NCBI RefSeq assembly: GCF_000315625.1
Contig: NW_005434588.1
Location: forward strand, 288,133-326,044
Origin: Guillardia theta CCMP2712
Taxonomy: Eukaryota; Protista; Cryptophyta
DNA length: 37,912 bases
Direction: 5' to 3'
Both the position numbers and the translations under genes were made by a program. The notes under the pieces were generated by a model, which saw nothing but the letters and a program-made list of their open reading frames with translations, was not told where the DNA came from and did not search any database. Shown here one piece after another: positions 6,050 to 37,514 of the stretch; position 1 is the first letter of the stretch, and the number at the start of each line of letters is the position of its first letter.

Positions 6050-7440
6050 CGGCCCCGCCGACTTACGACCTCGCCTGGCCTCGGCCCCACCCCCGCAGGC
6101 TACCCGGATTGTACCATGAAGGAACCGTCACTAGTAAGCTCAGCCTGCGGCTCAGCGGCTTGTGCTCCATGTCGGATGGCGCTCCTCAGTGTCTATGAAC
6201 CTCGGCACCGTCGGTCACTAGGTAGCCTACACAGGGTAACGTCCGCCCCCTACAGCATGTCCGGGCCGATTCCCTACGGCCATGAATAGAACGTGACTTC
6301 TTGTCTTCACCATGTACTGGAGAGACGGTCGGTCACTACTCAACAGCCGTGCTACACTTAAGATGCTGCTACAAGTTCAAGAGCATTGAAGAAGCGAGCA
6401 GGGAATACGCTGCTTGCCTGGCGTACGTTTCACAGCAAGCCAACAAGCTTCGCACAGTCGTCATGATCAATCCGTGTAATGATAACTCAAATCTATTGGT
6501 ACAGCTATCCTACCCTCGCCACCTCTCTCCGCGACCGCGTTACCACTTGCAGTCTAGTGAAACTCTTGTTCGCTTCTTACTCACCATGTAGCTGTCAGTA
6601 CAGACCCTCAGTGCGTTGATGCAGCGATGGCAGGGCCTTCCATCTTCGCACTTCTGCTTCTTCTGCCTGCAGGATACGCATGCTTGCTTGGTATGTCTCT
6701 GGTTCAACCGCTTGTCAGCTTTGCGAGCACCTGCGGGTCCCTGGACTGCTGTGACGAGCGCAGGCAACCTGACTTCCCCTTCTATCTCGGCCTCGGATGC
6801 CGGCGAGGACGAAGCATGATCTGGATCCTCTGTGAGGTCTGCTAGCTCCAAGAAGGATCGGAGGCTCTCGGGCCGAATGACAATATGGGAGATGGCGTCG
6901 TCGAGCGAGGATCCCGAAAGTGGGGCAGGTACCAGCGTACAGCCTTCTGCTTCGGGAGAGTAGGGGGGGGGAGAGGAGCAGGAAAGGCAGGAGAGGAACT
7001 CAGGCGGTAAGGGAGGTTGCTGCATGGCGGCTGCCGCGGTTCCCTGCATGCTGTTCGACGGAAATCCTGTGGTAAAAGGGTGCTTGTCCGAAGGTCACGT
7101 GACCCGAATAGTAAAAGAGTTAAAACTAGTTTTAATATGGTAAAACTGATTTTACGGTTGACCTGTGAAAAAAGAAAGTTTCCGGATTCCACTCGAATGG
7201 CTTCCTTGGCACTCCCGTGGTACTCGTGTGCAGTACCAGTAGGGTGAGAGTACCACGACTTACGAAGGTTTACTACAGAGCCAGACTTGTTGACAGTCAC
7301 ATCACACAATGCTACCGTACAGACTACTTGAGTACTTCGGTGCTAGCAGTAGGATACAGTTGGTAGGCGATGCTAGGACCCGGTATCATACGGTAATGGC
7401 GGCGACGGTACTCCATGCCACCGCTGTCAGCCTCTCCACG
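6050..7440. repeat. Tandem segmental duplication, copy 1
   Basis: 6050-6379 matches ~7780-8096, 6392-7048 matches 9003-9659, 7125-7271 matches ~9710-9837, and 7272-7440 matches 9841-10215 with many indels. Confidence 0.95.
6540..7049 (-). CDS. Zn(II)2Cys6 binuclear-cluster (GAL4-type) protein, copy 1
   Basis: KQACVSCRQKKQKCEDGRPCHRCINALRVC = C-x2-C-x6-C-x5-C-x2-C-x6-C. Start is 7049 or the GCCGCC-ATG at 7025. An ATG|GTGAGT donor right after the domain means the true 3' end may be spliced. Confidence 0.85.
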   Translation of the reverse strand: MQGTAAAAMQQPPLPPEFLSCLSCSSPPPYSPEAEGCTLVPAPLSGSSLDDAISHIVIRPESLRSFLELADLTEDPDHASSSPASEAEIEGEVRLPALVTAVQGPAGARKADKRLNQRHTKQACVSCRQKKQKCEDGRPCHRCINALRVCTDSYMVSKKRTRVSLDCKW

Positions 7441-7779
7441 TGTCACAACTACCCGTACCCCCCACCCCCCCCCCCCCCCCCTCCTCCCCCTCCCCCCGGC
7501 GGGGACCGTCGCACAGTGACCCCCACCGTAACTTTGAGTAAAGTGTCCGGTACCAGTGACTACGGTACTACGGCCTGTGACTCAGCCTGACACAAACTTG
7601 AATGGCAAGCATGAATGAAGGAGAGTCACTGAGTGGAGCTGAAGAACTTCGGAGGAAGAAACAAGCCTTGAAGGCCCGGGCCAGCCTGAGGGAGGAAAGG
7701 AAAGACGCCAAAGACGCCTGAGTTATATCAACCGCGGCCGCCCCGTCCAGGAGTCTGGCAATGATTGAAAGATCCGGCG

Positions 7780-10215
7780 CCCAGCCCCGCCGACTTACGA
7801 CGCGGGGCTAGCCTCCGATTGTACCATGAAGGGACCGTCACTAGTAAGCTCAGCCTGCGGCTCAGCGGCTTGTGCCCCATGTCGGATGGCGCTCCAAGTG
7901 TCCGACAGGCTGAGAGCCTCGGCACCGTCAGCCACTAGGTAGCCTACACAGGGTAACGTCCGCCCCCTACAGCATGTCCGGGCCGATTCCCTACGGCCAT
8001 GAATAGAACGTGACTTCTTGTCTTCACCATGTACTGGAGAGACGGTCGGTCACTACTCAACAGCCGTGCTACACTTAAGATGCTGCTACAAGTTCATGAG
8101 TTGTATACACATCACAGAGATCATCGGATTGTCAACGACACGCCGAGTAAAGTAAGCCTGGATGAAGAAGATAGACAAGCAGAAGATAGACGTCTCTAAG
8201 TTTACTGGGAGGTAAACTACGCACAATCACCACACTCACTGTGCATGCAAGTGGGGAAATCAGAAGGCCAAACGCTGGGGAAGCGTCCGCTTAAATAAGG
8301 AGTATCCGGGAGAGTATCCGACGAGTATCCGGGTGTTTTCGGATCCTCATGTGGATACAACATCAGTATTGAGATCTCTATCAGGTTTCAAAGCCAATTC
8401 TTTTGACAGCTTCTGCAGAACTGCTGCTTGTCTGCACCTAATGAAGGCTCACAACACGTGATCAAGATGCCAGTTAACATCACCATCCTAACACCACGAC
8501 AACAATCCTTCTTCTGTACAGCGAAATCATGCAGACCACTACAAACAATGAAGAGAGCAAAGGTCCATACTGTATGTCCGAAGAGCACTGACTTACCCGG
8601 TCTTAGGCTGTTATATGCACGTCTTCAACTCAGTCCAAGACGGCACCCTCAAACCAACAAAACTCTGCCTTGTTGCTCTGAAAGGATTGATTGCATTGAA
8701 ACTCACGTCCATACACGAACATAACCTGAGTCACAAAAATCTCAGATTCATTCAAGACTCAAGCGGGTGATGTTGAGCAGTGACCGAGCGGGAGGTCGGG
8801 CATGTCAGAGTTCATCAATCAATGCAGTTGTCAGCAACTGTTCTCCGATGAAAACTTCGTCCTCCGACTGCCTGCAACAGGGTCTCGAAGTCGTTCCCAT
8901 ACGAGTGACTGTAGCATGCAGAAACATGTCATGTTTGCTTCACCACTCGACACATCAGCTTTCAACTCTCAAAATCGGTCTCACCATGTCACCGCAGTGA
9001 AAAAGCGAGCAGGGAATACGCTGCTTGCCTGGCGTACGTTTCACAGCAAGCCAACAAGCTTCGCACAGTCGTCATGATCAATCCGTGTAATTATAACTCA
9101 AATCTATTGGTACAGCTATCCTACCCTCGCCACCTCTCTCCGCGACCGCGTTACCACTTGCAGTCTAGTGAAACTCTTGTTCGCTTCTTACTCACCATGT
9201 AGCTGTCAGTACAGACCCTCAGTGCGTTGATGCAGCGATGGCAGGGCCTTCCATCTTCGCACTTCTGCTTCTTCTGCCTGCAGGATACGCATGCTTGCTT
9301 GGTATGTCTCTGGTTCAACCGCTTGTCAGCTTTGCGAGCACCTGCGGGTCCCTGGACTGCTGTGACGAGCGCAGGCAACCTGACTTCCCCTTCTATCTTG
9401 GCCTCGGATGCCGGCGAGGACGAAGCATGATCTGGATCCTCTGTGAGGTCTGCTAGCTCAAAGAAGGATCGGAGGCTCTCGGGCCGAATGACAATATGGG
9501 AGATGGCGTCGTCGAGCGAGGATCCCGAAAGTGGGGCAGGTACCAGCGTACAGCCTTCTGCTTCGGGAGAGTAGGGGGGGGGAGAGGAGCAGGAAAGGCA
9601 GGAGAGGAACTCAGGCGGTAAGGGAGGTTGCTGCATGGCGGCTGCCGCGGTTCCCTGCAAGCTGCTGGACGGAGACCCAAATATCAGTAAAAGATTTAAA
9701 ACTAGTTTTAATATGGTAAAACTGGTTTTACGGATGACCTGTGAAAAAAGAAAGTTTCCGGATTCCGCTCGAATGGCTTCGTGGTAACTCGTGTGCAGTA
9801 CCAGTAGGGTGAGAGTACCACGACTTACGAAGGTTTGCCGTACTACATCGGAGCCAGAGGCTCAGACTGGTCACCGGGGTTGACACGGTCACATCACTGA
9901 TGAGCCTCATGGCGGCTCATCAGTAGTACTACCGTTTTTAACTTAACTTTTGAGTAAAGGACCTACCGTACTACGGTACAGACTCGGTGACCGTCCTACT
10001 TGGCAAGTTGAGTACAGTTTGGTTCTAGCACCGTGACGGTAGGCCGGGTACAGGCTTACGGTCGGTATGGTACTCCTGCAGCCTCAGAGTGCGGTACGGT
10101 ACGGTCCTGGGACCCGGTATCATACGGTTTGGTGGCAGCGACCGTACCGTACTACGGCACGGTACTTCGTGCCACCCGCCGTTTGATACCGCCGGAGTCG
10201 ACGGTCAGCCTCACG
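7780..10215. repeat. Tandem segmental duplication, copy 2 (extra ~0.9 kb at 8097-9002; expanded upstream region)
   Basis: Collinear with 6050-7440, near-identical over the gene body. Confidence 0.95.
9151..9636 (-). CDS. Zn(II)2Cys6 binuclear-cluster protein, copy 2
   Basis: Differs from copy 1 by two internal residues (L>F, E>K). The upstream ATG of copy 1 is TTG here (9660), so the shared ATG at 9636 is the likely start. Confidence 0.85.
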   Translation of the reverse strand: MQQPPLPPEFLSCLSCSSPPPYSPEAEGCTLVPAPLSGSSLDDAISHIVIRPESLRSFFELADLTEDPDHASSSPASEAKIEGEVRLPALVTAVQGPAGARKADKRLNQRHTKQACVSCRQKKQKCEDGRPCHRCINALRVCTDSYMVSKKRTRVSLDCKW

Positions 10216-10720
10216 CGGCGGGCACAAGGCCGGTAACCCGGGCCGGCGGGGCGCCGCTGCCTGGGCCGGCTGATACCGTAGTACGTAACGTGACGGTCCG
10301 ATCACAACTCACAGAGTCAGTCCCACGGCCGCCCCCGGGCCCCCGGGCCCGGCCCAGCAGTGCCAGTGACTCGTGACTCACTGGTGACGCATATTCACTG
10401 CCGAGTTCCGACGTCGGAACGGTTCAACTTCAACACGGGGCTTCAAGGCTTGACAGTGCCACGGACTCGACGGTCCGACTCCGATCACCGTCGTCCGAAG
10501 ACCGGTCGGGGACCGGGCAGCGCTGCCGCTCCGGTCGGGCCCGGCCGGAGCCGCATCACTGAGTCATACCGGGTCCCGGACTGGATCCCGGACTCGACCC
10601 GGAAGGAAGCCTTGAAGCCTGCAGTGCCTTAAAACTCGGGCCGGGCCGCCGTGACTCGGGAGCCCTAGTAGGCACATAATAACGGTCTCTGGTATCTGTG
10701 TAACCGTAGGCGTCTCTTCG
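9838..10720. other. GC-rich micro-palindrome block upstream of Zn-cluster copy 2
   Basis: Many nested odd-length palindromes, e.g. 9896-9924, 9964-9978, 9985-9993, 9998-10008, 10030-10040. Confidence 0.8.
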
Positions 10721-10760
10721 CGCCATGTCCTAGTTTTGATTAGTGCAGGCAAGGAGGCGG

Positions 10761-10917
<157 letters not shown>

Positions 10918-17945: not shown

Positions 17946-18740
17946 CACCCCGGCCCCCGCATCCGGAGTCCGGCGGGTGACTCATCAGTACTGCCGTAGT
18001 TGACTGACGGTCTGAGGACTTTACCGGCCCGGCATCCGATCCGGTCTCTCAGAGGGCCCGACTGAGCGGCCCGGCGGGACCGCCGTCGGCGGGCCGCCAC
18101 TGTCAGCACTGGCCGCCCGGCCAGCCGCAACTCGAGGCTCCGGCCCGGGCCCGGCGAGCCGCGAGTCACGCGGCGGCATCATCCGAAGTCGTCACGGTGG
18201 CACTGATCGGACCGTATCGTCCGGTCCCGGGCCGAGACCCGGTACCCCGGGCCGGTGGCGCCACCGTCGGAAAACCATCTTCGTACGGAGTCGGATCAAG
18301 TCAGGGCCGGCGGCGGCGCCCCCGGCCGCCGGATCTCACTGATCGGATGGAACGTACGGTATGCCAGCCGTGGGCCGCCAGTCAGATAGCGCCGAGTTAC
18401 GGTGACCGGACCGTGTGAAAAAACTCTCCTGTCACTAAACCAAGACGACTTACGTGTCACTGTCAGTCAAACCGGCGGCGAACTCACGTCAAGTTGCGGC
18501 GGCCACGGTCTATTATCGGAGCGCCGGGCCCGGGGGCCGGGCCGGGCGGCGCCCCGGGGCCCGGCGCTACTAGCCCCGGCCGGGCCGATGCATCACCGGG
18601 CAGTGAGTCACCGATCGGACTCAGTGATGATCATCGTCCCGGGGATGCCGTGGCCCCACCGCCGCGGCGGGCAGCGCCAGCTGCCAGTGGGCGGCCCGCC
18701 GGTCGAAACTTCAGGCGGCCGCCGTGATTGATCCGGGAAT
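17945..18740. other. GC-rich micro-palindrome block
   Basis: Dense CCSGG, GASTC, GTSAC, CGATCG, ACSGT words and small hairpins such as gccgcg-agtca-cgcggc. Confidence 0.7.
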
Positions 18741-21476: not shown

Positions 21477-23147
21477 ATGCAGCTCGTGGCTGGCCTCGTG
21501 CTCCTATCGGCAGCATCATGCGCTGCTTTCAGTCCTGTTGCCCCTTTGAGGTGATGACTTGCCCTATTGTGCATGATAGTTGCTAACGATCCCATGGAAC
21601 AGGGTTGTTGGATCGTCTGCTGCTAGGTTGAATGTTTCACCGGCAAGGTTTGCTACCCGGCCTATCTTGGTGAGACAAAGCATTTTCAAACACTGCAGCC
21701 AGCATACCTGCTCGCCTTCATTTTTGTTGTCCTCCCTTGCAATCATCTTTCTCATGGCACTGCTCTGACCTCTGACCTTCAGGCCAACGTCCGAATGGAC
21801 ATGGAAATTCCTAAGTCTCTCCCCATCGAGCCCAAGACCAAGGAGGACAGGAAGGGCAAGCCCTCGGAGACGAGGGTTGTCGTCCTCGGTCTCAGCCACA
21901 AGACAGCTACCGTCGAGGTCCGCGAGAAGTTGGCCGTGCAGGAGCACAACTGGCAGAGCGTCGGTCGCGCCATCGCCGCGCTCCCGTCGCTCAAGGAGGC
22001 TGCCGTCCTCTCCACGTGCAACCGCTTCGAGATCTACTTTGTCACCAACGACGTGCACGCCGGGATCAGGGAGGTGACGGAGTACCTGAGCACGACCCGC
22101 GGGGTGTCGATGAAGGAGCTGAGGAGCTCGCTCTTCATGCTCAGCGAGGACGACGCGGTGTGGCATGCGCTGCGGGTGGCGGGAGGGCTGGACTCCCTGG
22201 TGATCGGGGAGGGGCAGATCCTGTCGCAGATGAAGCGGTGCTACGAGATCGCGACGGAGAAGCAGGGAGCGGCGGGGAAGGTGCTGACGCGCATGCTCAA
22301 CACGGCGGTGTCGGCAGGAAAGCGGGTGAGGTCGGAGACGGGGATCGCGCGAGGAGGAGTGTCGATCTCGTCTGCGGCGGTGGAGCTGGTGGAGAAGAAC
22401 TGCCTGCAGGACCTGGACCTTGACATGGACCAGCTGGACATCTGTATCCTCGGGGCCGGGAAGATGGCGAGGCTGCTGGTGCAGCACCTGCTGCCCCGCA
22501 ACGTGAAGAGCATCACCATCGTGAACCGATCGCAGCAGGGGGCGGACAACCTGGCGTCGATGTTCCCGGATGCGAACATCAAGACGGCGCTCATGGACTC
22601 GATGCTGGAGATGGTCGGGACGTCGCACGTGACGTTCGCGTGCACGGGGGCGATGGAGCCGATCCTGTACCAGGAGAACCTCGAGGGCGCGATGCAGCGA
22701 GGCGCGATGCTGGTGGACATCAGCGTGCCGAGGAACATCGACGACGTCGGGGCGAACAAGGTCGAGGGCGTGAAGGCGTACAACGTGGACGATCTCAAGG
22801 CCGTGGTTGCGGCGAACCAGGCGAGGAGGCAGCGGCTGGTGCTGGAGGCGGAGGAGCTGCTGCAGGATGAGATGAAGTCGTTCAAGGGTTGGCATCAGTC
22901 CCTTGGAACCGTGCCAATGATTACCAAACTTCAGAGCCGCGCCAACAAGATCCGCCGCGAGGAGCTTCTCAAGTACGAGCGGAAGCTGTCGGGGCTGAGC
23001 GCGCAGGAGCGAGAGACGGTGGAGAGGCTGACCAAGGGGATCGTGGCGAAGCTGCTGCACGGCCCCATGTCGCACTTGAGGACAGTTGATGACGTTTCGG
23101 ACAGGCAGTCGACTGTAAAGAGCCTGGAGGCAATGTTCCGCCTCTAG
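21477..23147 (+). CDS. hemA: Glutamyl-tRNA reductase, plastid-targeted, copy 1 (3 exons)
   Basis: Exons 21477-21550, 21603-21669 and 21783-23147. Presequence MQLVAGLVLLSAASCAA|FSP. Motifs GLSHKTA..REKLA, LSTCNRFE (catalytic Cys), GEGQILSQ, GAGKM (NADPH), DISVPRNI. Confidence 0.97.
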
Positions 23148-24678
23148 AGCTCTTAGCTTGTCTGAGCGTGTAATTTTGTAGTCCTCACATGGTCTCCATT
23201 GATTTTTTTGAAGTTGTAAATTATTGTTGGCGTCAAACCTGAGTTGTGCTGCTCTCCCATTCCCCCGCCTTATCTGCTACATCCTCTTTACGCTCCATCC
23301 ATGTACCCTGCCGATCCTCCACACATGACTAGCATCTCCATCTCACCCGCACTGATGCATACATTCAGAGATTACTCTTACGACATCGCTTCATTATCTT
23401 TCCAGCACCATCACAAGATCCTGAACATAGCACGAATGCTGTTTATCACTGCCTCTGACTCCGACAGCTCAGGGTCTACCGTCTTCATGTGCGACATGGG
23501 GCCGTGCAGCAGCTTCGCCACGATCCCCTTGGTCAGCCTCTCCACCGTCTCTCGCTCCTGCGCGCTCAGCCCCGACAGCTTCCGCTCGTACTTGAGCATC
23601 TCGGCTATCCTAATCTCCTCCGCCCTGCTCCTCAGCCTTGCGATCATGGGGACGTTGTCAAGGGAATGGCACCATTCCTTGAACGACTGAACCTCGTCCT
23701 GCATCAGCTCCTCCGCCTCCAGCACCAGCCGCTGCCTCCTCGCCTGGTTCGCCGCAACCACGGCCTTGAGATCGTCCACGTTGTACGCCTTCACGCCCTC
23801 GACCTTGTTCGCCCCGACGTCGTCGATGTTCCTCGGCACGCTGATGTCCACCAGCATCGCGCCTCGCTGCATCGCGCCCTCGAGGTTCTCCTGGTACAGG
23901 ATCGGCTCCATCGCCCCCGTGCACGCGAACGTCACGTGCGACGTCCCGACCATCTCCAGCATCGAGTCCATGAGCGCCGTCTTGATGTTCGCGTCCGGAA
24001 ACATCGACGCCAGGTTGTCCGCCCCCTGCTGTGATCGGTTCACGATGGTGATGCTCTTCACGTTGCGGGGCAGCAGGTGCTGCACCAGCAGCCTCGCCAT
24101 CTTCCCGGCCCCGAGGATACAGATGTCCAGCTGGTCCATGTCAAGGTCCAGGTCCTGCAGGCAGTTCTTCTCCACCAGCTCCACCGCCGCAGACGAGATC
24201 GACACTCCTCCTCGCGCGATCCCCGTCTCCGACCTCACCCGCTTTCCTGCCGACACCGCCGTGTTGAGCATGCGCGTCAGCACCTTCCCCGCCGCTCCCT
24301 GCTTCTCCGTCGCGATCTCGTAGCACCGCTTCATCTGCGACAGGATCTGCCCCTCCCCGATCACCAGGGAGTCCAGCCCTCCCGCCACCCGCAGCGCATG
24401 CCACACCGCGTCGTCCTCGCTGAGCATGAAGAGCGAGCTCCTCAGCTCCTTCATCGACACCCCGCGGGTCGTGCTCAGGTACTCCGTCACCTCCCTGATC
24501 CCGGCGTGCACGTCGTTGGTGACAAAGTAGATCTCGAAGCGGTTGCACGTAGAGAGGACGGCAGCCTCCTTGAGCGACGGGAGCGCGGCGATGGCGCGAC
24601 CGACGCTCTGCCAGTTGTGCTCCTGCACGGCCAACTTCTCGCGGACCTCGACGGTAGCTGTCTTGTGGCTGAGACCGA
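21886..24678. repeat. 1.19-kb inverted repeat formed by the two hemA cores (21886-23075 / 23489-24678)
   Basis: Arms are collinear without indels (coordinate sum 46564 at both ends) and near-identical except for a diverged patch at ~22860-22967. Confidence 0.95.
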
Positions 24679-25086
24679 TGGCGGCAATTTGCATCCTATT
24701 CCTCTCCTGCCGCTTCGTCACAGGAGGAGGACACGCCTTCGTGTCGACTTGCAAGTCTCGTGGAGGCTCCTGCCTCATGCTCGCAGCCTCCTGCTTCCTC
24801 TGCCCCTCGGGCGGGTGGGCTGACTTGCTCAACAGTGTCTTCTTGGAGGGGAACGCGATGACCTGCCGCTAGTTCAGCCATGTCCTCCTCTACCGGATCA
24901 TCTTCACCATCTGGATCGACGGGCAGACCTTGAGCAACGATCTCTTGCTGCCTGGCAGTGGCAGCGGCCTGTGACGAAGTCGCTTCAGTCTTCAGAGAGA
25001 GGAGCGGGAGGTGAAAACCTTGGTGAGAACGCCATGAGCTGGCGCATGGAGAGGAATGCGAAGATGAGGAACCATTTCCTCTTCAT
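23411..25086 (-). CDS. hemA: Glutamyl-tRNA reductase, plastid-targeted, copy 2 (3 exons)
   Basis: ATG 25086 gives MKRKWFLIFAFLSMRQLMA|FSP. Two short introns with the same phases (2, 0) as copy 1 lead into the 23411-24832 ORF, with all catalytic motifs intact. Confidence 0.93.
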
Positions 25087-26019: not shown

Positions 26020-29000
26020 TCAGTGCTGGCCCATCTCCTTGCGGAGCTGGTGGACCTCCCAGCGCATCTGACGGAGCTCAGAGAGGAACTTGCTCAAGTC
26101 GACCTCGGCGCCTTCCTGCGGGAGAGAGGGTGAGAGGAGGCGAGTGGGAACAGGCGGCAGCGGCAGCGGCAACAAGCAGCAGCAGCAGCAGGACAAGGAC
26201 GAGGAGTACGGTACAACAGCAGCTCAGGAGAAGAATGAGCAGTAAGCAGCAGGACAAGGAGGAGGAGGGAGTGGGAGGAGAGGAGCGGTAGGTGGAGAGG
26301 GGGAGGGAGGGTGGGAGGACCTCCGCGCTTGATGTCTTGGCCTTGGTCGAGGCCTGCATGCTCGACCAGATCTTGAGCGCATCTCCCATGGGGATCTGGA
26401 GGCGAGAGAGCATGTCGTTCCTGGACATGAGGAAGAAAGCCTCGTCGTCGATGTTCTGATCGTGAAACTTCTGCATGTGATAGCTCATGTTGAGCTCCGA
26501 GAGCGTCTTGAAGATGTGCTCGCACCTCGTCTGATCCAGCCCCTCCACCATGAAGTCCCCGTTGCCCTCTAGCCCCTTGTCATCCCGCATACTTCCCTGC
26601 GTCTTCATCCTCATCCCCGCCAGCGTCTTGTCCGCCTTCTTCTTGATGAAGATGACGTCTTCTACGGACTGCATCCCAATGATAATGCGCGTCTTGCCGA
26701 TGGTCGGGCTCGTGATGGGGAGGACGCAGCCGCCCTTGCCGAAGGAGAAGCCGTTGCTCAAGCCGATGTTGATGATGGAGGGCTGAAAGAACGAGTTGGG
26801 ATCCAGCTGGCCGAGAGTAGAGAAGGAGCTGGCGGTCAGGGAGGAGAGGTTGTCGAACACGTACAGAAGCATCCCCTTGGAGTTGAGCGTGAAGGAAAAC
26901 TTCCTCCACTGCCCGAAGTCGTCGTGCTCCTGCTTCAACACCCCCAGCGGCCTGTCTTCATGGCAGAGTAGCCAACCACGGTGAACCTCAAGGGCCTCCG
27001 ACGTCTTCCCCGCGGAAGGAGTGCGCTTGAAAGGATGCGCAGCCCGGAGGATGCTCTCCTGCTGCTTGCGGACAGCCCCGACAAACTCTTCCTTCTCCCC
27101 AGCGGTGTTGAACTCCACGTCGAGACTCGTCTGGGAGGAGGAGAAGTAGATTCTCAACGCCGAGCTCTTGTTCCATACGTTCTCTAGCCCAGTCACTGTC
27201 GTGATCGGGGAGCTCTTAGCAGTACTGTTGGGCTTCTTGGAAGGGATCTTGTTCCCGCTGGCGTCTGTCTCTACGCTGTCGTCCTGGGACAGGCTGCCTG
27301 CGGTGAGGTCGAGGACGAGCCTCTTGTAGCCGGACTCCAGGAGGTTTAGCTTCTTCTTGACCAGCCAGACCATAAGCCGGGAGTCGTCCTGCTCCTGGGG
27401 TTTGAAGCTCTCCAACCTCTGATGCTTGATCCTCTCCGACTCCCTCTGCTCGCTCTGCGCCAAGAGCAGCTCGTGGCGCTCGAGCAGATCGTTCTTCATC
27501 TCTGTCAGCATGCGATCGATGGTGCCGAAACCTCTCTCGGACCTCTGAGACAGCTTCTTGGTCACGTGGTTGTTGATCCCGAAGCGAGCAGCCCGCAAGG
27601 AGCAGAACTGGAAGAGCTTGTCATAAAAGGCCGAGAACATCTCCTTGATGTCCAGGACGCTGGCGTACGTGAGGATGAAGCAAGAGACTTCGGTATTGGC
27701 GGTAGCGTCCTCCGCATGGTGACGGCAGATCTCGGGGAAGAGAGTCATCTCGCCGAAGAACGCTTCCTGCCCTCCCTTCTCTGCCGTCCGAAGGCGCATG
27801 AAAGACTCCGAGGAGTAGATAGACTCTCCCGTCTCGTTCACGTACTCCTCCAACCTCATCCCGTGCAGGTTCACCATCCCCTCAGTGATGAAGTACATCT
27901 CCCCGCCCTCGTCTCCCCTAAGGTAGATGCTGTCCGCCCTCCTGTACACCATGGGCTGCAGCCTGACGTAGATCTCCCCGATGACCTCGGGGTCAAGGTT
28001 GAACAACAGGGGGATTTTCTTCTCTGCCTCTGACCCCAGGTGCTTCAACGTCATCCTCCTCAGCTGCCTGGGGAACGTGTTGAGCAGCTCCATCTCCGTG
28101 AAGAGCTCTCCGCTGCGTCTCCAGCACCCTCCAAAGTAAGCTGTCACACGCCGCTTCAGGTCAGGCCTGGCAAGGCGGAAGTCGAGGTACTCAGAAACAG
28201 TCCGCAGCTTGTCCTCGAACCTCAGGCGGGCCCCCTGGGCTTGCGAGAGAAGGGTAGTGATGTTTCCCATGGCAAACCCAAAGATCACCACCCCCGTCAG
28301 CGCCACAAACACACTGTAAATCCTCTCCTCGTGTGTTACGGGGAGGACGTCGCCGTACCCGAGGGTACTGACCGTGGCCAGCGCCCAGTACAGGCAGAGG
28401 ACGTACTTTTCGATGTCGGAGCCATGATCGGCAATCTCTGGGTTGTAAGCTCGCATCCAGTTGTCGGCTGATGCGGGATCAATCATCATCACAAACATGC
28501 AGCCCAGGAAATGTGCAGAGAAGACCATCAAGAAGATGGAGCGGAAGATCTTGAGAACGGTCCTGAGAGACCCGGACCTGTCCTTCTCTTCCAGCTGCGA
28601 CAGCTTGTTCAGGAATCTCACAGCTCGCACCATCTTCAGGATACGGATGAACTTGAGGACACGCAGCGTCGGAGCAAGGTTGTCGCCCGAGGACGCCGCA
28701 GTCACAATCTTATCAAAGGGAACGCTGCCAGGCAGATCAATCCAGAACCATCCCCGCAGGTAGTTCCTAGCGATCATCCACATGTTGGTAGTGTAAACTC
28801 CTTGATGCGTGTAAGCAGTACAGAAGGAGAGTATAACATCCGCACAGAAGATCACATCCAAGCACAAGTCCCAGATCTGGTATGGCGTCATGGGACCCTT
28901 GATAGGATCTGAACCGAAAGCGAGGAGCAACGGAACAGCAAACGTGGTGTACAGGAGCAGAAACATGACAACCAAGTCCCACGACTGCTTGCTCAGGGAA

Positions 29001-29911
29001 TCGGGATCGAAAGGAAACAGAGGGTTGTTCGTCGGCTGAGTCTGAGCTCCTTCGTTTCTTTCCCGGAAAACTATCTTGACCAGGTCAGAAAATGTCAGCC
29101 TCAGTTCTTCCGACTCCTTGCTTTGCTTGGAATGCTTGTCCACGAACACCTTCAGCCTGACTCTCCCTGATATCAATTCTTGCTTCTTCGAGTACGTGTT
29201 CGAATGTTCGAGATAGTACCACTTGTCCGTGACTTCGTCGTACTCTGGGCCCTCCAGGTTTAGCGTCACGCAACCCATGAAATCCTTGGCATTCCCGAGC
29301 ACAGAGAAGTCGTGGTCCCACACAACAACATCCAGCTTGTTGCAAGGATTGCTCATCTCATCCTCCAGGGTCAACGTCTCATCCCAGACAGGGTCCAACG
29401 TCTCTGTGCATACTTTGGTCTTGAGGACACGAGATCCGAAGTGGAGCTCCACGAAGGGGTCAGACTTGCCGTTCTTGTCTCGGGCAGCAAGGCTCTCGGC
29501 CTGGACCACAGTGACAGTGATCTGGCGAGTGTTGATGATTCTCTCGATGGTCTCCGCTATGTTACAGTCACGAGGGATGAATCCAAGGCCAGAAAGAAGC
29601 TCCCGGGCATCGTCGACGAGGATCGAAGAGTCTACGGGCTGTGCCCCGTCGTTTCCACCCTGCGCTTTCAGATGCTTCATGAATGCATCTTTGAGCTCTG
29701 CAAGCTCGTCTGGCGCAAAGAAGTATCCGTACTTCTTCTGCATGTCCTTGAGCTCTCTGTCATCTATGGAACGCGTCGTAACTTCCTCTGGACCGGAGTG
29801 GCCGTTGGCAGAGGACTCTTTCCTGGCGAAACCATTCTCGTCAAATACTGCCTCCTCCTGCGCCCAAGTCATCTCAGCTGTAGCTGAGACTTCCGTTTGA
29901 TGGCCGTTCAT
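26020..29911 (-). CDS. Voltage-gated K+/CNBD-family channel (~1228 aa): EF-hand-like lobe + C2 + 6TM + CNBD + SAM + coiled coil
   Basis: Exon 29911-26321, intron 26320-26116, terminal exon 26115-26020 (EGAEVDLSKFLSELRQMRWEVHQLRKEMGQH*). WD..LLYT S1 start, S4 LRVLKFIRILKMVRAVRFL, filter STLGYGD, C-linker, EMYFI..G..FFGEM CNBD, SAM-like MQKFHDQNIDDEAFFLMSRNDML..LQIPMGDALKI. Confidence 0.93.
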
Positions 29912-31910: not shown

Positions 31911-32460
31911 GTCTGAGCAGGCGCGGTGACCGACCTCCGGAAAATTGAAGAGCCTGAGAATGAGGGCGATGAAGGCCGCCGGTAGCTAGCAGTAACTTAA
32001 CTTTGAGTGAATTAAGTGGTACCGTGGTACAGTAAGAGTCCCAGGCCGAGTCTGAGGCCGGCGGGAGTCCTTCCGAACTTCAAACTCAGTCGAAGTCACC
32101 GAAGTTCTGACTCGATGATGAACTGAAACGCCTGTGCGACAGTGTCAGGTCAAGCCTCCTCGACTCTCCTGATTGTCCTCGTACTGATTTTTGACTTAAC
32201 TTTGAGTAAAAGAACGGTTCCGGGGGCGGGACTCAGCCTGACTCTTCGCCGGGCCGACTCCGACGCGGCGGCGCGCCGGGCCGGGGGGGAATGGTCCCCC
32301 GGTGGAGGCGCCTGACGCGGCGCGCACTGCGGCGATCCGGGACTCGGGGAACTTCCGAGTTCGGAACCGTCTGAGTCACTCTTGCGACTTGTCACGAGTC
32401 AAACATACTATATATGATAACTTCGGAACTTCACTGCCGGTCCCTAAAACTTTGAGCCTG
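31910..32460. other. Micro-palindrome block with two copies of the dispersed motif, upstream of the EML gene
   Basis: taacttaactttgagt at 31993-32008, longest motif copy at 32148-32211, dense GASTC/CCSGG words. Confidence 0.7.

Positions 32461-37432: not shown

Positions 37433-37514
<82 letters not shown>

Follow-up and report, generated by a model that had tools for sequence, protein, structure and literature searches.

A tandem gene duplication with unequal upstream regions

The stretch of DNA analysed here, referred to as the window, comprises 37,912 nt of the genome of the cryptophyte Guillardia theta CCMP2712 (positions 288133-326044 of contig NW_005434588.1) and includes a Zn(2)Cys(6) gene that is tandemly duplicated, with both copies on the minus strand. 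No further copy is found in the 87.1-Mb, 669-contig assembly, to which all whole-genome counts below refer. Our subject is the sequence upstream of the second copy, which has grown by small insertions, and in particular an 8-nt insertion of fixed palindromic format that recurs throughout the genome and that may be the excision scar of a transposon.

The first long open reading frame (ORF) of each gene copy encodes 169 amino acids (6540-7049 for copy 1; 9151-9660 for copy 2) and matches the Pfam family Zn_clus (PF00172), at 25.6 bits against a cut-off of 21 for copy 1 and above the cut-off for copy 2. As the preliminary description of this DNA had stated, the gene bodies are nearly identical: 6383-7062 and 8994-9673 share 98.8% identity over 680 nt (672 matched and 8 mismatched positions) and align without an indel. 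In the flanks, 6098-6383 aligns with 7806-8100 (274 matches, 11 mismatches) and 7110-7271 with 9686-9836. The gene pair appears to be a recent tandem duplication, with a substitution divergence of 1-5%.

Beyond 7271 and 9836, the two copies share only short collinear exact anchors (10, 9, 9, 19 and 9 nt, up to 7434/10212), with weaker anchors running on to ~7673/10617; between the anchors the alignment is ambiguous in places. By these anchors, which occur in the same order in both copies, the compact stretch upstream of copy 1 (7272-7440) corresponds to a stretch ~210 nt longer upstream of copy 2 (9837-10215), in agreement with the ~180 and ~390 nt given earlier. Substitution divergence within the anchors is ~3-5%, similar to that of the flanks, yet the ~210 nt of difference is distributed over more than 12 indels. 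The indel process in this upstream region has therefore been far faster than substitution.

The expanded stretch is also rich in palindromes. When arms of at least 5 nt and loops of 0-3 nt are counted, 9837-10215 contains 10 palindromes, compared to 1.8 +/- 1.5 expected from dinucleotide shuffles (0 of 300 shuffles reached 10), while the compact stretch contains none with an arm of 5 nt or longer. All of the palindromes in the preliminary description were recovered at the positions given there, including an 11-bp stem at 9896-9906/9914-9924.

An 8-nt insertion of fixed format

The diagnostic insertion converts a triplet B, of which the ancestral state has a single copy, into B-X-rc(B)-Z-B, where rc(B) is the reverse complement of B, and X and Z are single bases, mostly C or G. 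We refer to this structure as the frame. Its net gain of 8 nt is made up of the target triplet (3), one base, the inverted triplet (3) and a second single base. The direct repeat that flanks the inverted segment is 3 nt long, and a matrix of palindrome arm against direct repeat peaks at 4 + 3; the conspicuous longer palindromes arise where the base before B happens to pair. In each frame, reverse-complement sequence of the flank directly adjoins the junction and the duplication is retained, as would be expected of hairpin-type scars in general.

Three events match the frame exactly. One is GTA-C-TAC-G-GTA (X=C, Z=G) at 9968-9978, where copy 1 has the triplet once, and which is overlapped by a second frame starting at 9964; the other two, at position 10000 and in a related sequence, are described below. 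A further frame, TAC-C-GTA-C-TAC at 10145-10155, was found by the frame search. In total, there are four frames in 9837-10215 (0.4 expected), and ten more C/G-centred frames lie in a GC-rich palindrome island further upstream (10216-10760), which itself contains 12 palindromes against 3.2 expected. Across 9837-10760 all 14 frames are C/G-centred, and 0.9 are expected (0 of 500 randomisations reached this number). The upstream side of copy 1 is not devoid of them, with three frames in 7272-7800 against 0.3 expected.

Polarity is provided by a close relative, X6, which is a low-depth freshwater-metagenome contig covering 9795-10042. Over these 248 nt, X6 differs from the reference by one substitution (at 9915) and two 8-letter differences. 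The first difference is the frame TTG-G-CAA-G-TTG at 10000-10010, whose 8 nt at 10000-10007 are absent from both copy 1 and X6; the reference lineage has therefore gained them recently by insertion. The second consists of 8 extra letters of X6, behind position 9849 (between 9849 and 9850), that give GGA-C-TCC-G-GGA (X=C, Z=G), a frame that the reference does not have and for which copy 1 gives no polarity. With one insertion polarised by copy 1 together with X6, and two 8-nt differences against a single substitution, the earlier proposal that this site has been hit repeatedly and recently is upheld. A second polarised case occurs elsewhere, in a repeat-tail copy at G000:C14:385035-385066 that reads TTA-C-TAA-G-TTA, whereas a single TTA stands in the family consensus, which represents at least 1500 copies; near-frames are borne by two more copies of this tail.

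Because palindromic, GC-rich DNA is hard to sequence, an assembly artefact might be suspected. However, a 1063-nt contig from an independent DNA run of 2021 matches 9787-10750 without a difference, and a 2026 run provides raw reads of the chromatin immunoprecipitation (ChIP)-input type, at ~5-12x over the entire stretch and with no variants in the region of the finding. The sequence thus has the support of raw reads, and we regard the chance of an artefact as negligible.

A second possibility is that the difference between the copies has an ordinary history. The duplication could be old, with a gene body homogenised by conversion or held by selection, while normal indels accumulated upstream, or copy 1 could have been shortened by deletions between short repeats. 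Consistent with such a history, identity is graded, from 98.8% in the body to ~96-97% in the flanks, most of the differences are unpolarised, and if a frame lost sequence by deletion between its 3-nt repeats, the result would be precisely the compact state. On the other hand, the upstream anchors are no more diverged than the flanks despite the number of indels between them, one event is polarised as an insertion, and the 10 palindromes of copy 2 have no counterpart in copy 1. In addition, the frame is a derived structure that is in excess genome-wide (below). An ordinary history is in our view improbable, and an old duplication whose gene body was converted does not account for the pattern.

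Other components of the expansion

Frames were considered as an explanation of the whole expansion, and this was rejected, because removal of the intact frames from 9827-10215 yields only three events, or 24 of the ~210 extra nt. The expansion had previously been described as a dozen short inverted-copy insertions. Serial insertion of inverted copies of the flank is supported, but the implied uniformity is not, since the frames make up the minor fraction just given and one piece of 34 nt derives from a repeat tail (below). Likewise, there are four 8-nt extras as had been counted, but they do not have a common structure. Two of them lack the frame format: GGCTCAGA, which forms GAGCC-AGA-GGCTC with 5-nt arms and a 3-nt loop at 9851-9863, and CCGTGACG, which forms ACCGT-G-ACGGT at 10026-10040 and is a self-palindrome rather than a copy of its flank.

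The largest of the extra pieces has more than one part. It begins with a 31-nt stretch that stands in place of 6 nt of copy 1 and carries the 11-bp stem with a 7-nt loop (9896-9924), in which are nested two C-centred odd palindromes, CATCA-C-TGATG and ATGAG-C-CTCAT. This is followed by a micro-insertion on the plus strand (9929-9968) made up of the 25-nt 3' tail of a dispersed repeat (9935-9959) and the letters GAC, set between direct repeats of CTACCG (9929-9934 and 9963-9968); copy 1 has CTACCG once. When up to 2 mismatches are allowed, a 23-nt motif of this tail, TTTTAACTTAACTTTGAGTAAAG, has at least 1583 occurrences genome-wide, compared to 0 for a control. All 20 of the tail copies that were sampled stop at the same base and retain from 23 to ~185 nt. 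Because they have one fixed end and variable truncation, the copies of TTTTAACTTAACTTTGAGTAAAG can be understood as the tails of a retroelement-like repeat. The piece at 9935-9968 shows the fixed 3' end, variable 5' truncation and duplication of a 5'-truncated insertion of a non-long-terminal-repeat (non-LTR) element, and judging from its sequence it is most readily taken as the aborted insertion of a retroelement tail, which made a 6-bp duplication of its own.

Other occurrences of the TTTTAACTTAACTTTGAGTAAAG motif in the window, in addition to 9935-9959, are at 7527-7545, 31992-32012 and 32191-32211, and it is also present at loci L034-L053. It often lies beside palindrome islands, sometimes in inverted pairs. 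The motif was tried as the terminal inverted repeat of a MITE (miniature inverted-repeat transposable element) family acting as the agent of the insertions, and was rejected because there is no target duplication around the inverted pairs.

What is left of the expansion, in pieces of 5, 3, ~9, 13 and 14 nt among others, might be scars that have decayed or were imprecise. Serial small insertions, and not of a single kind, have thus enlarged the promoter side of copy 2.

Genome-wide recurrence of the frame

The frequency of the frame was evaluated in a 248-kb sample, consisting of twenty 10-kb pieces of the window's contig, twenty 2-kb loci and the window itself, with a second-order Markov null in 400-nt blocks. 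In this sample, odd palindromes whose arm n and direct repeat k add up to 7 are enriched, with 83 against 34 expected for (4,3), 49 against 30 for (5,2), 45 against 27 for (6,1) and 35 against 14 for (7,0), while off-diagonal cells and other loop sizes are at ~1.2-1.5x. There are 227 frames in all, compared to 85 expected. The excess resides in frames with C/G centres, of which there are 170 against ~29 expected. Each of the four centre pairs XZ contributes (CG 71 against 6.8, CC 38 against 6.5, GC 32 against 7.2 and GG 29 against 6.2), whereas each pair containing A or T is at ~1-1.6x. Frame analogues with 0- or 2-nt centres at X or Z are at 0.9-1.4x, and a variant with a 4-bp duplication is a minority, at 24 against 7.3 expected. 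The triplet B appears to be unconstrained, having 55% GC and no consensus. Nor does the enrichment reflect low complexity: AT-bearing triplets remain enriched (70 against 9.2 expected with two A/T, 16 against 2.2 with three), and those not centred on C/G are at ~1x.

Counts in the whole genome are in line with the sample. The 11-mer GGACTCCGGGA, as in the X6 frame, occurs 625 times compared to 60 for its reversed control, and TTGCCAAGTTG occurs 372 times compared to 113, whereas the A/T-centred GGAATCCTGGA has only 33 occurrences. By extrapolation, there would be ~3-5 x 10^4 intact frames genome-wide. They are strongly clustered, with 80% of neighbours lying less than 200 nt apart against 13% for a uniform distribution, and the GC content around them is 0.60, compared to 0.49 in the sample. 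The total number of palindromes over 200 kb is not raised (836 against 818 in composition-matched controls), and it is only the clustering of palindromes and the specific frame that stand above controls. The site first described is therefore not unique. It is a particularly dense instance of a stereotyped insertion signature that is spread across the genome and still active.

GC-rich (0.60-0.72), palindrome-dense islands occur about once per 20 kb on the contig, for example at 17950-18720 of the window, and others are at L028:801-1700, L027:4800-5600 and L022:6300-7200. Windows of 400 nt with nine or more palindromes number 43, compared to 1 in controls. The islands have short words in common, but no long sequence.

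One could also suppose that the palindromes are selected binding sites gained by turnover, such as CGG/CCG half-sites for the Zn-cluster factor itself. In support of this, the gene that has this stretch upstream of it is itself of the Zn(2)Cys(6) type, and ACGGT/ACCGT and CGG-N-CCG-like words reach 17 per kb there, compared to 1-2 per kb elsewhere in the window. However, the same frames are found throughout the genome, and because triplet B can be any sequence, the regularity of the frame is structural rather than that of a motif. Moreover, there is no RNA from the Zn(2)Cys(6) genes in the RNA run examined. Selection for binding sites is accordingly a very improbable origin for the palindromes.

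A proposed model of transposon excision

Of the mechanisms that could produce such a signature, we favour one in which the frames are excision scars of a cut-and-paste transposon that makes a 3-bp target duplication and whose flank hairpins retain the element's terminal C; we put its probability at roughly 55%. Transposases of the hAT, Transib/RAG and MULE groups are known to hairpin the flanking DNA and to leave palindromic scars with P-nucleotides (PMC5873905; PMC5499845). We infer the steps of the model from the pattern of the frames. The transposon, with ends of the form 5'-C...G-3', would insert with a 3-bp (sometimes 4-bp) target duplication. At excision, the nick made by the transposase in the non-transferred strand would lie one base into the element, and each flank would be sealed as a hairpin with the element's 5'-terminal C at its tip. 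Host nucleases would then open the hairpins, mostly 3' of the tip, and the resulting overhangs would anneal over the three bases of rc(B), followed by fill-in and ligation. Because both flanks carry the same triplet, the overhangs would share rc(B), and the product would always be +8. Opening on the other side of the tip, with fill-in, would exchange C for G and give the CC, GG and GC variants. The frames gather in GC-rich islands, with the site described here among the densest.

Two properties of the centres are of particular relevance to this model. The first is the asymmetry between CG and GC (71 against 32). Since reversal of the sequence interconverts the two classes, this asymmetry is not the result of composition or of a general preference for palindromes. 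If hairpins were opened 3' of the tip with a probability of ~0.67 each, the predicted values for the four centre classes are 64/32/32/16, compared to observed excesses of 64/31/23/25. The second property is the behaviour of frames where the flanking ancestral base is A or T. In 58 of 76 such frames, Z is still G or C, and in the polarised event at 10000 the centre G is beside an ancestral A, which together argue that the centres originate outside the target.

The preliminary description had proposed repeated cutting and repair by a DNA transposon or an unknown hairpin-forming nuclease, with the P-nucleotide scars of hAT (8-bp duplication) and RAG as precedents. A hairpin type of cut and repair remains the best mechanism, but the 8-bp duplication does not survive, as the direct repeat is only 3 nt. 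It is true that four of the extras are 8 nt long and that the palindromes are odd, as in hAT scars (PMC5873905), and when they are read with the 5-bp duplication of RAG/Transib or the 8-bp duplication of hAT, the centre of several events seems to be the complement of the base next to it, as hAT palindromes are centred on the complement of the base adjoining the element (PMC5873905). For example, an 8-bp duplication with its right copy from the complement of T1 fitted three events. Both this and the 5-bp reading were rejected by the A/T-flank test: centres of the hAT type would follow the neighbouring ancestral base, but the centres here are C or G whatever that base is. In addition, the even zig-zag expected of exact RAG-type hairpins is not enriched, and, as a weak negative, the searches gave no match to the hAT dimerisation domain (Dimer_Tnp_hAT) or to Pfam RAG1. 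The reading as classic hAT or RAG scars is thus largely refuted by the A/T-flank test, and there is very little likelihood that it is correct in its original form.

An alternative that involves no transposon is templated insertion during break repair or replication, through fold-back or snap-back by an end-joining polymerase or through template switches at a fork, with the promoter-side islands being fragile. Template switching does produce inverted copies of the immediate flank followed by a return to the original template, and clustering in GC-rich, palindrome-prone DNA would be in accordance with it. No agent transposon has been found, and some extras look as if copied from nearby, such as CGTGACGGT of the extra at 10026-10040, which is found again at 10288-10296, or the tail piece that is common to 7527-7573. 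Such a process would, however, be expected to give wholly templated inserted bases and variable switch points, whereas in the frames the centres are untemplated and the geometry is fixed. It predicts neither a fixed 1-nt untemplated C/G centre, nor more CG than GC, nor a fixed 3-nt return to +8, and even-centred and 2-nt-centred analogues are not enriched. A hairpin loop of 1 nt is, furthermore, easily formed by transesterification but hard to form by polymerase fold-back. Templated insertion is therefore a real but rather unlikely alternative for the frames.

Several considerations weigh against the transposon excision model. Foremost is that the element itself has not come to light. In ~280 kb no convincing element with a 3-bp duplication and C...G ends was seen; when inverted-repeat elements flanked by short duplications were sought de novo in the 280 kb, all hits were due to chance or were artefacts of a large inverted gene pair, and there is no CATTCTG...CAGAATG element in the sample. 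No element is seen at any frame site, nor is a filled site paired with a scar. Six-frame Pfam searches of the genome gave no match to RAG1 (PF12940), the hAT dimerisation domain (PF05699) or the CACTA transposase Tnp2 (PF02992, Transposase_21), although these negatives are weak because control genomes gave no match either. MULE-type transposase domains do exist in the genome, with six weak matches just over the Pfam cut-off, and count in favour of the model. As to the geometry, we know of no documented case of a nick one base inside the element combined with a flank hairpin.

Other points of this kind concern the scars and their counting. CACTA/En-Spm elements (5'-CACTA...TAGTG-3') have the 3-bp duplication, the C at the 5' end and the G at the 3' end that the model calls for, but the footprints reported for them in plants are 3-5 bp, compared to a fixed +8 with an inverted triplet here. 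The small share of the expansion taken up by intact frames and the two of four 8-nt extras that are off format have been described above. The nulls are Markov chains on the 248-kb sample, which is mostly from one contig. Finally, the mode at 8 nt that the preliminary description anticipated does not exist in a 24-nt repeat tail, where insertions of +1 to +9 number 3, 7, 6, 8, 7, 3, 3, 3 and 2; a length of 8 therefore marks one specific product rather than all indels.

A broader and more tentative extension of the model, which we consider possible but doubtful as a whole, is that a hairpin-forming transposon system has written tens of thousands of 8-base scars of identical format, using an undescribed cleavage geometry that leaves the terminal C at the hairpin tip, and that the GC-rich palindrome islands 5' of genes are built largely from these scars. 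Each scar would add cruciform-prone DNA that attracts more insertions, so that promoters might, through positive feedback, change far more quickly than coding sequence does.

Other features of the locus and window

The gene copies also differ outside the upstream region. Copy 2 has a segment of ~894 nt (8101-8993) in place of 7 nt in copy 1, and no simple insertion junction was found for it. The segment includes part of a very high-copy repeat (8067-8384), which has a contig depth of ~1450 compared to ~90 in its surroundings. Minus-strand RNA reads of this repeat are abundant and end in loose poly(T), which indicates that its transcript is polyadenylated. Many genomic copies of the repeat have ...GAGTAAAG TAA directly before them. 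In the 3' part of the duplicated unit, there is another 8-nt difference between the copies (7902-7909; ..CAG-G-CTG), with an imperfect first arm. One contig of the independent DNA run (X2) joins copy 1 (to 7221) to copy 2 (from 9787) across a 50-nt identical block; either the assembly took a path through the repeat here, or one copy is missing from a variant. A 40-nt C-rich tract upstream of copy 1 (7458-7497) has no counterpart in copy 2, and contigs of the independent run appear to be cut there.

Elsewhere in the window, two complete genes for glutamyl-tRNA reductase lie tail to tail, at 21795-23147 on the plus strand and 23411-24832 on the minus strand, forming a 1.2-kb inverted duplication of 96% identity that offered no informative indel. 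The microsatellite (GGAGCA)n forms two perfect arrays, one of 26 units and one of 14; these and a related imperfect array are located at 10761-10917, 37433-37514 and 190-375; these arrays occur in both orientations within 38 kb, and there are many other purine- or pyrimidine-rich microsatellites. An ORF of 1277 amino acids on the minus strand (26078-29911) combines C2, ion-transport channel and cyclic-nucleotide-binding domains.

Implications and comparison with known systems

Transposon excision scars have been known one locus at a time, whereas here a single format can be recognised from sequence alone, counted genome-wide (on the order of 10^4-10^5) and seen to be polymorphic between close relatives. 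To our knowledge, a scar format of this kind has not been described, and literature searches brought up no paper that deals with either palindromic islands or Transib in Guillardia. If the excision model is correct, the frames would constitute a readable and polarisable record of excision history, and would provide a mechanistic origin for the palindrome-rich GC islands beside genes in G. theta. The locus is also a natural case in which indels turn over promoter-side sequence ten or more times as fast as substitutions do. Should the agent be a RAG-like transposase with a shifted nick, it would bear on flank-hairpin chemistry among the relatives of the V(D)J recombinase; if there is no transposon, the fixed geometry with its C/G centres would indicate a repair activity not yet described.

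Among known systems, template switching with quasi-palindrome correction and the insertions made by polymerase theta resemble the frames in that a reverse-complement copy of adjacent sequence makes or perfects a hairpin. They differ in having no fixed geometry, no untemplated C/G turning points, no strand asymmetry and no constant gain of 8. RAG and Transib share with the proposed mechanism a flank hairpin made by the transposase and element ends that start with C (CAC...), and they have GC-rich targets. Their hairpins, however, are exact in the case of RAG and would give even palindromes, and Transib duplicates 5 bp, while the frames are odd with a retained C and a duplication of 3 (rarely 4) bp.

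The footprints of hAT elements such as Ac/Ds, Tam3 and Hermes are similar to the frames in their odd palindromes, P-nucleotides and retained duplication, and in their dependence on the side at which the hairpin tip is opened (PMC5873905). In contrast to hAT, the duplication in the frames is 3 rather than 8 nt, the centre is constantly C or G, and one product of fixed length dominates. We suggest that this last difference arises because the short duplicated triplet allows the overhangs to anneal.

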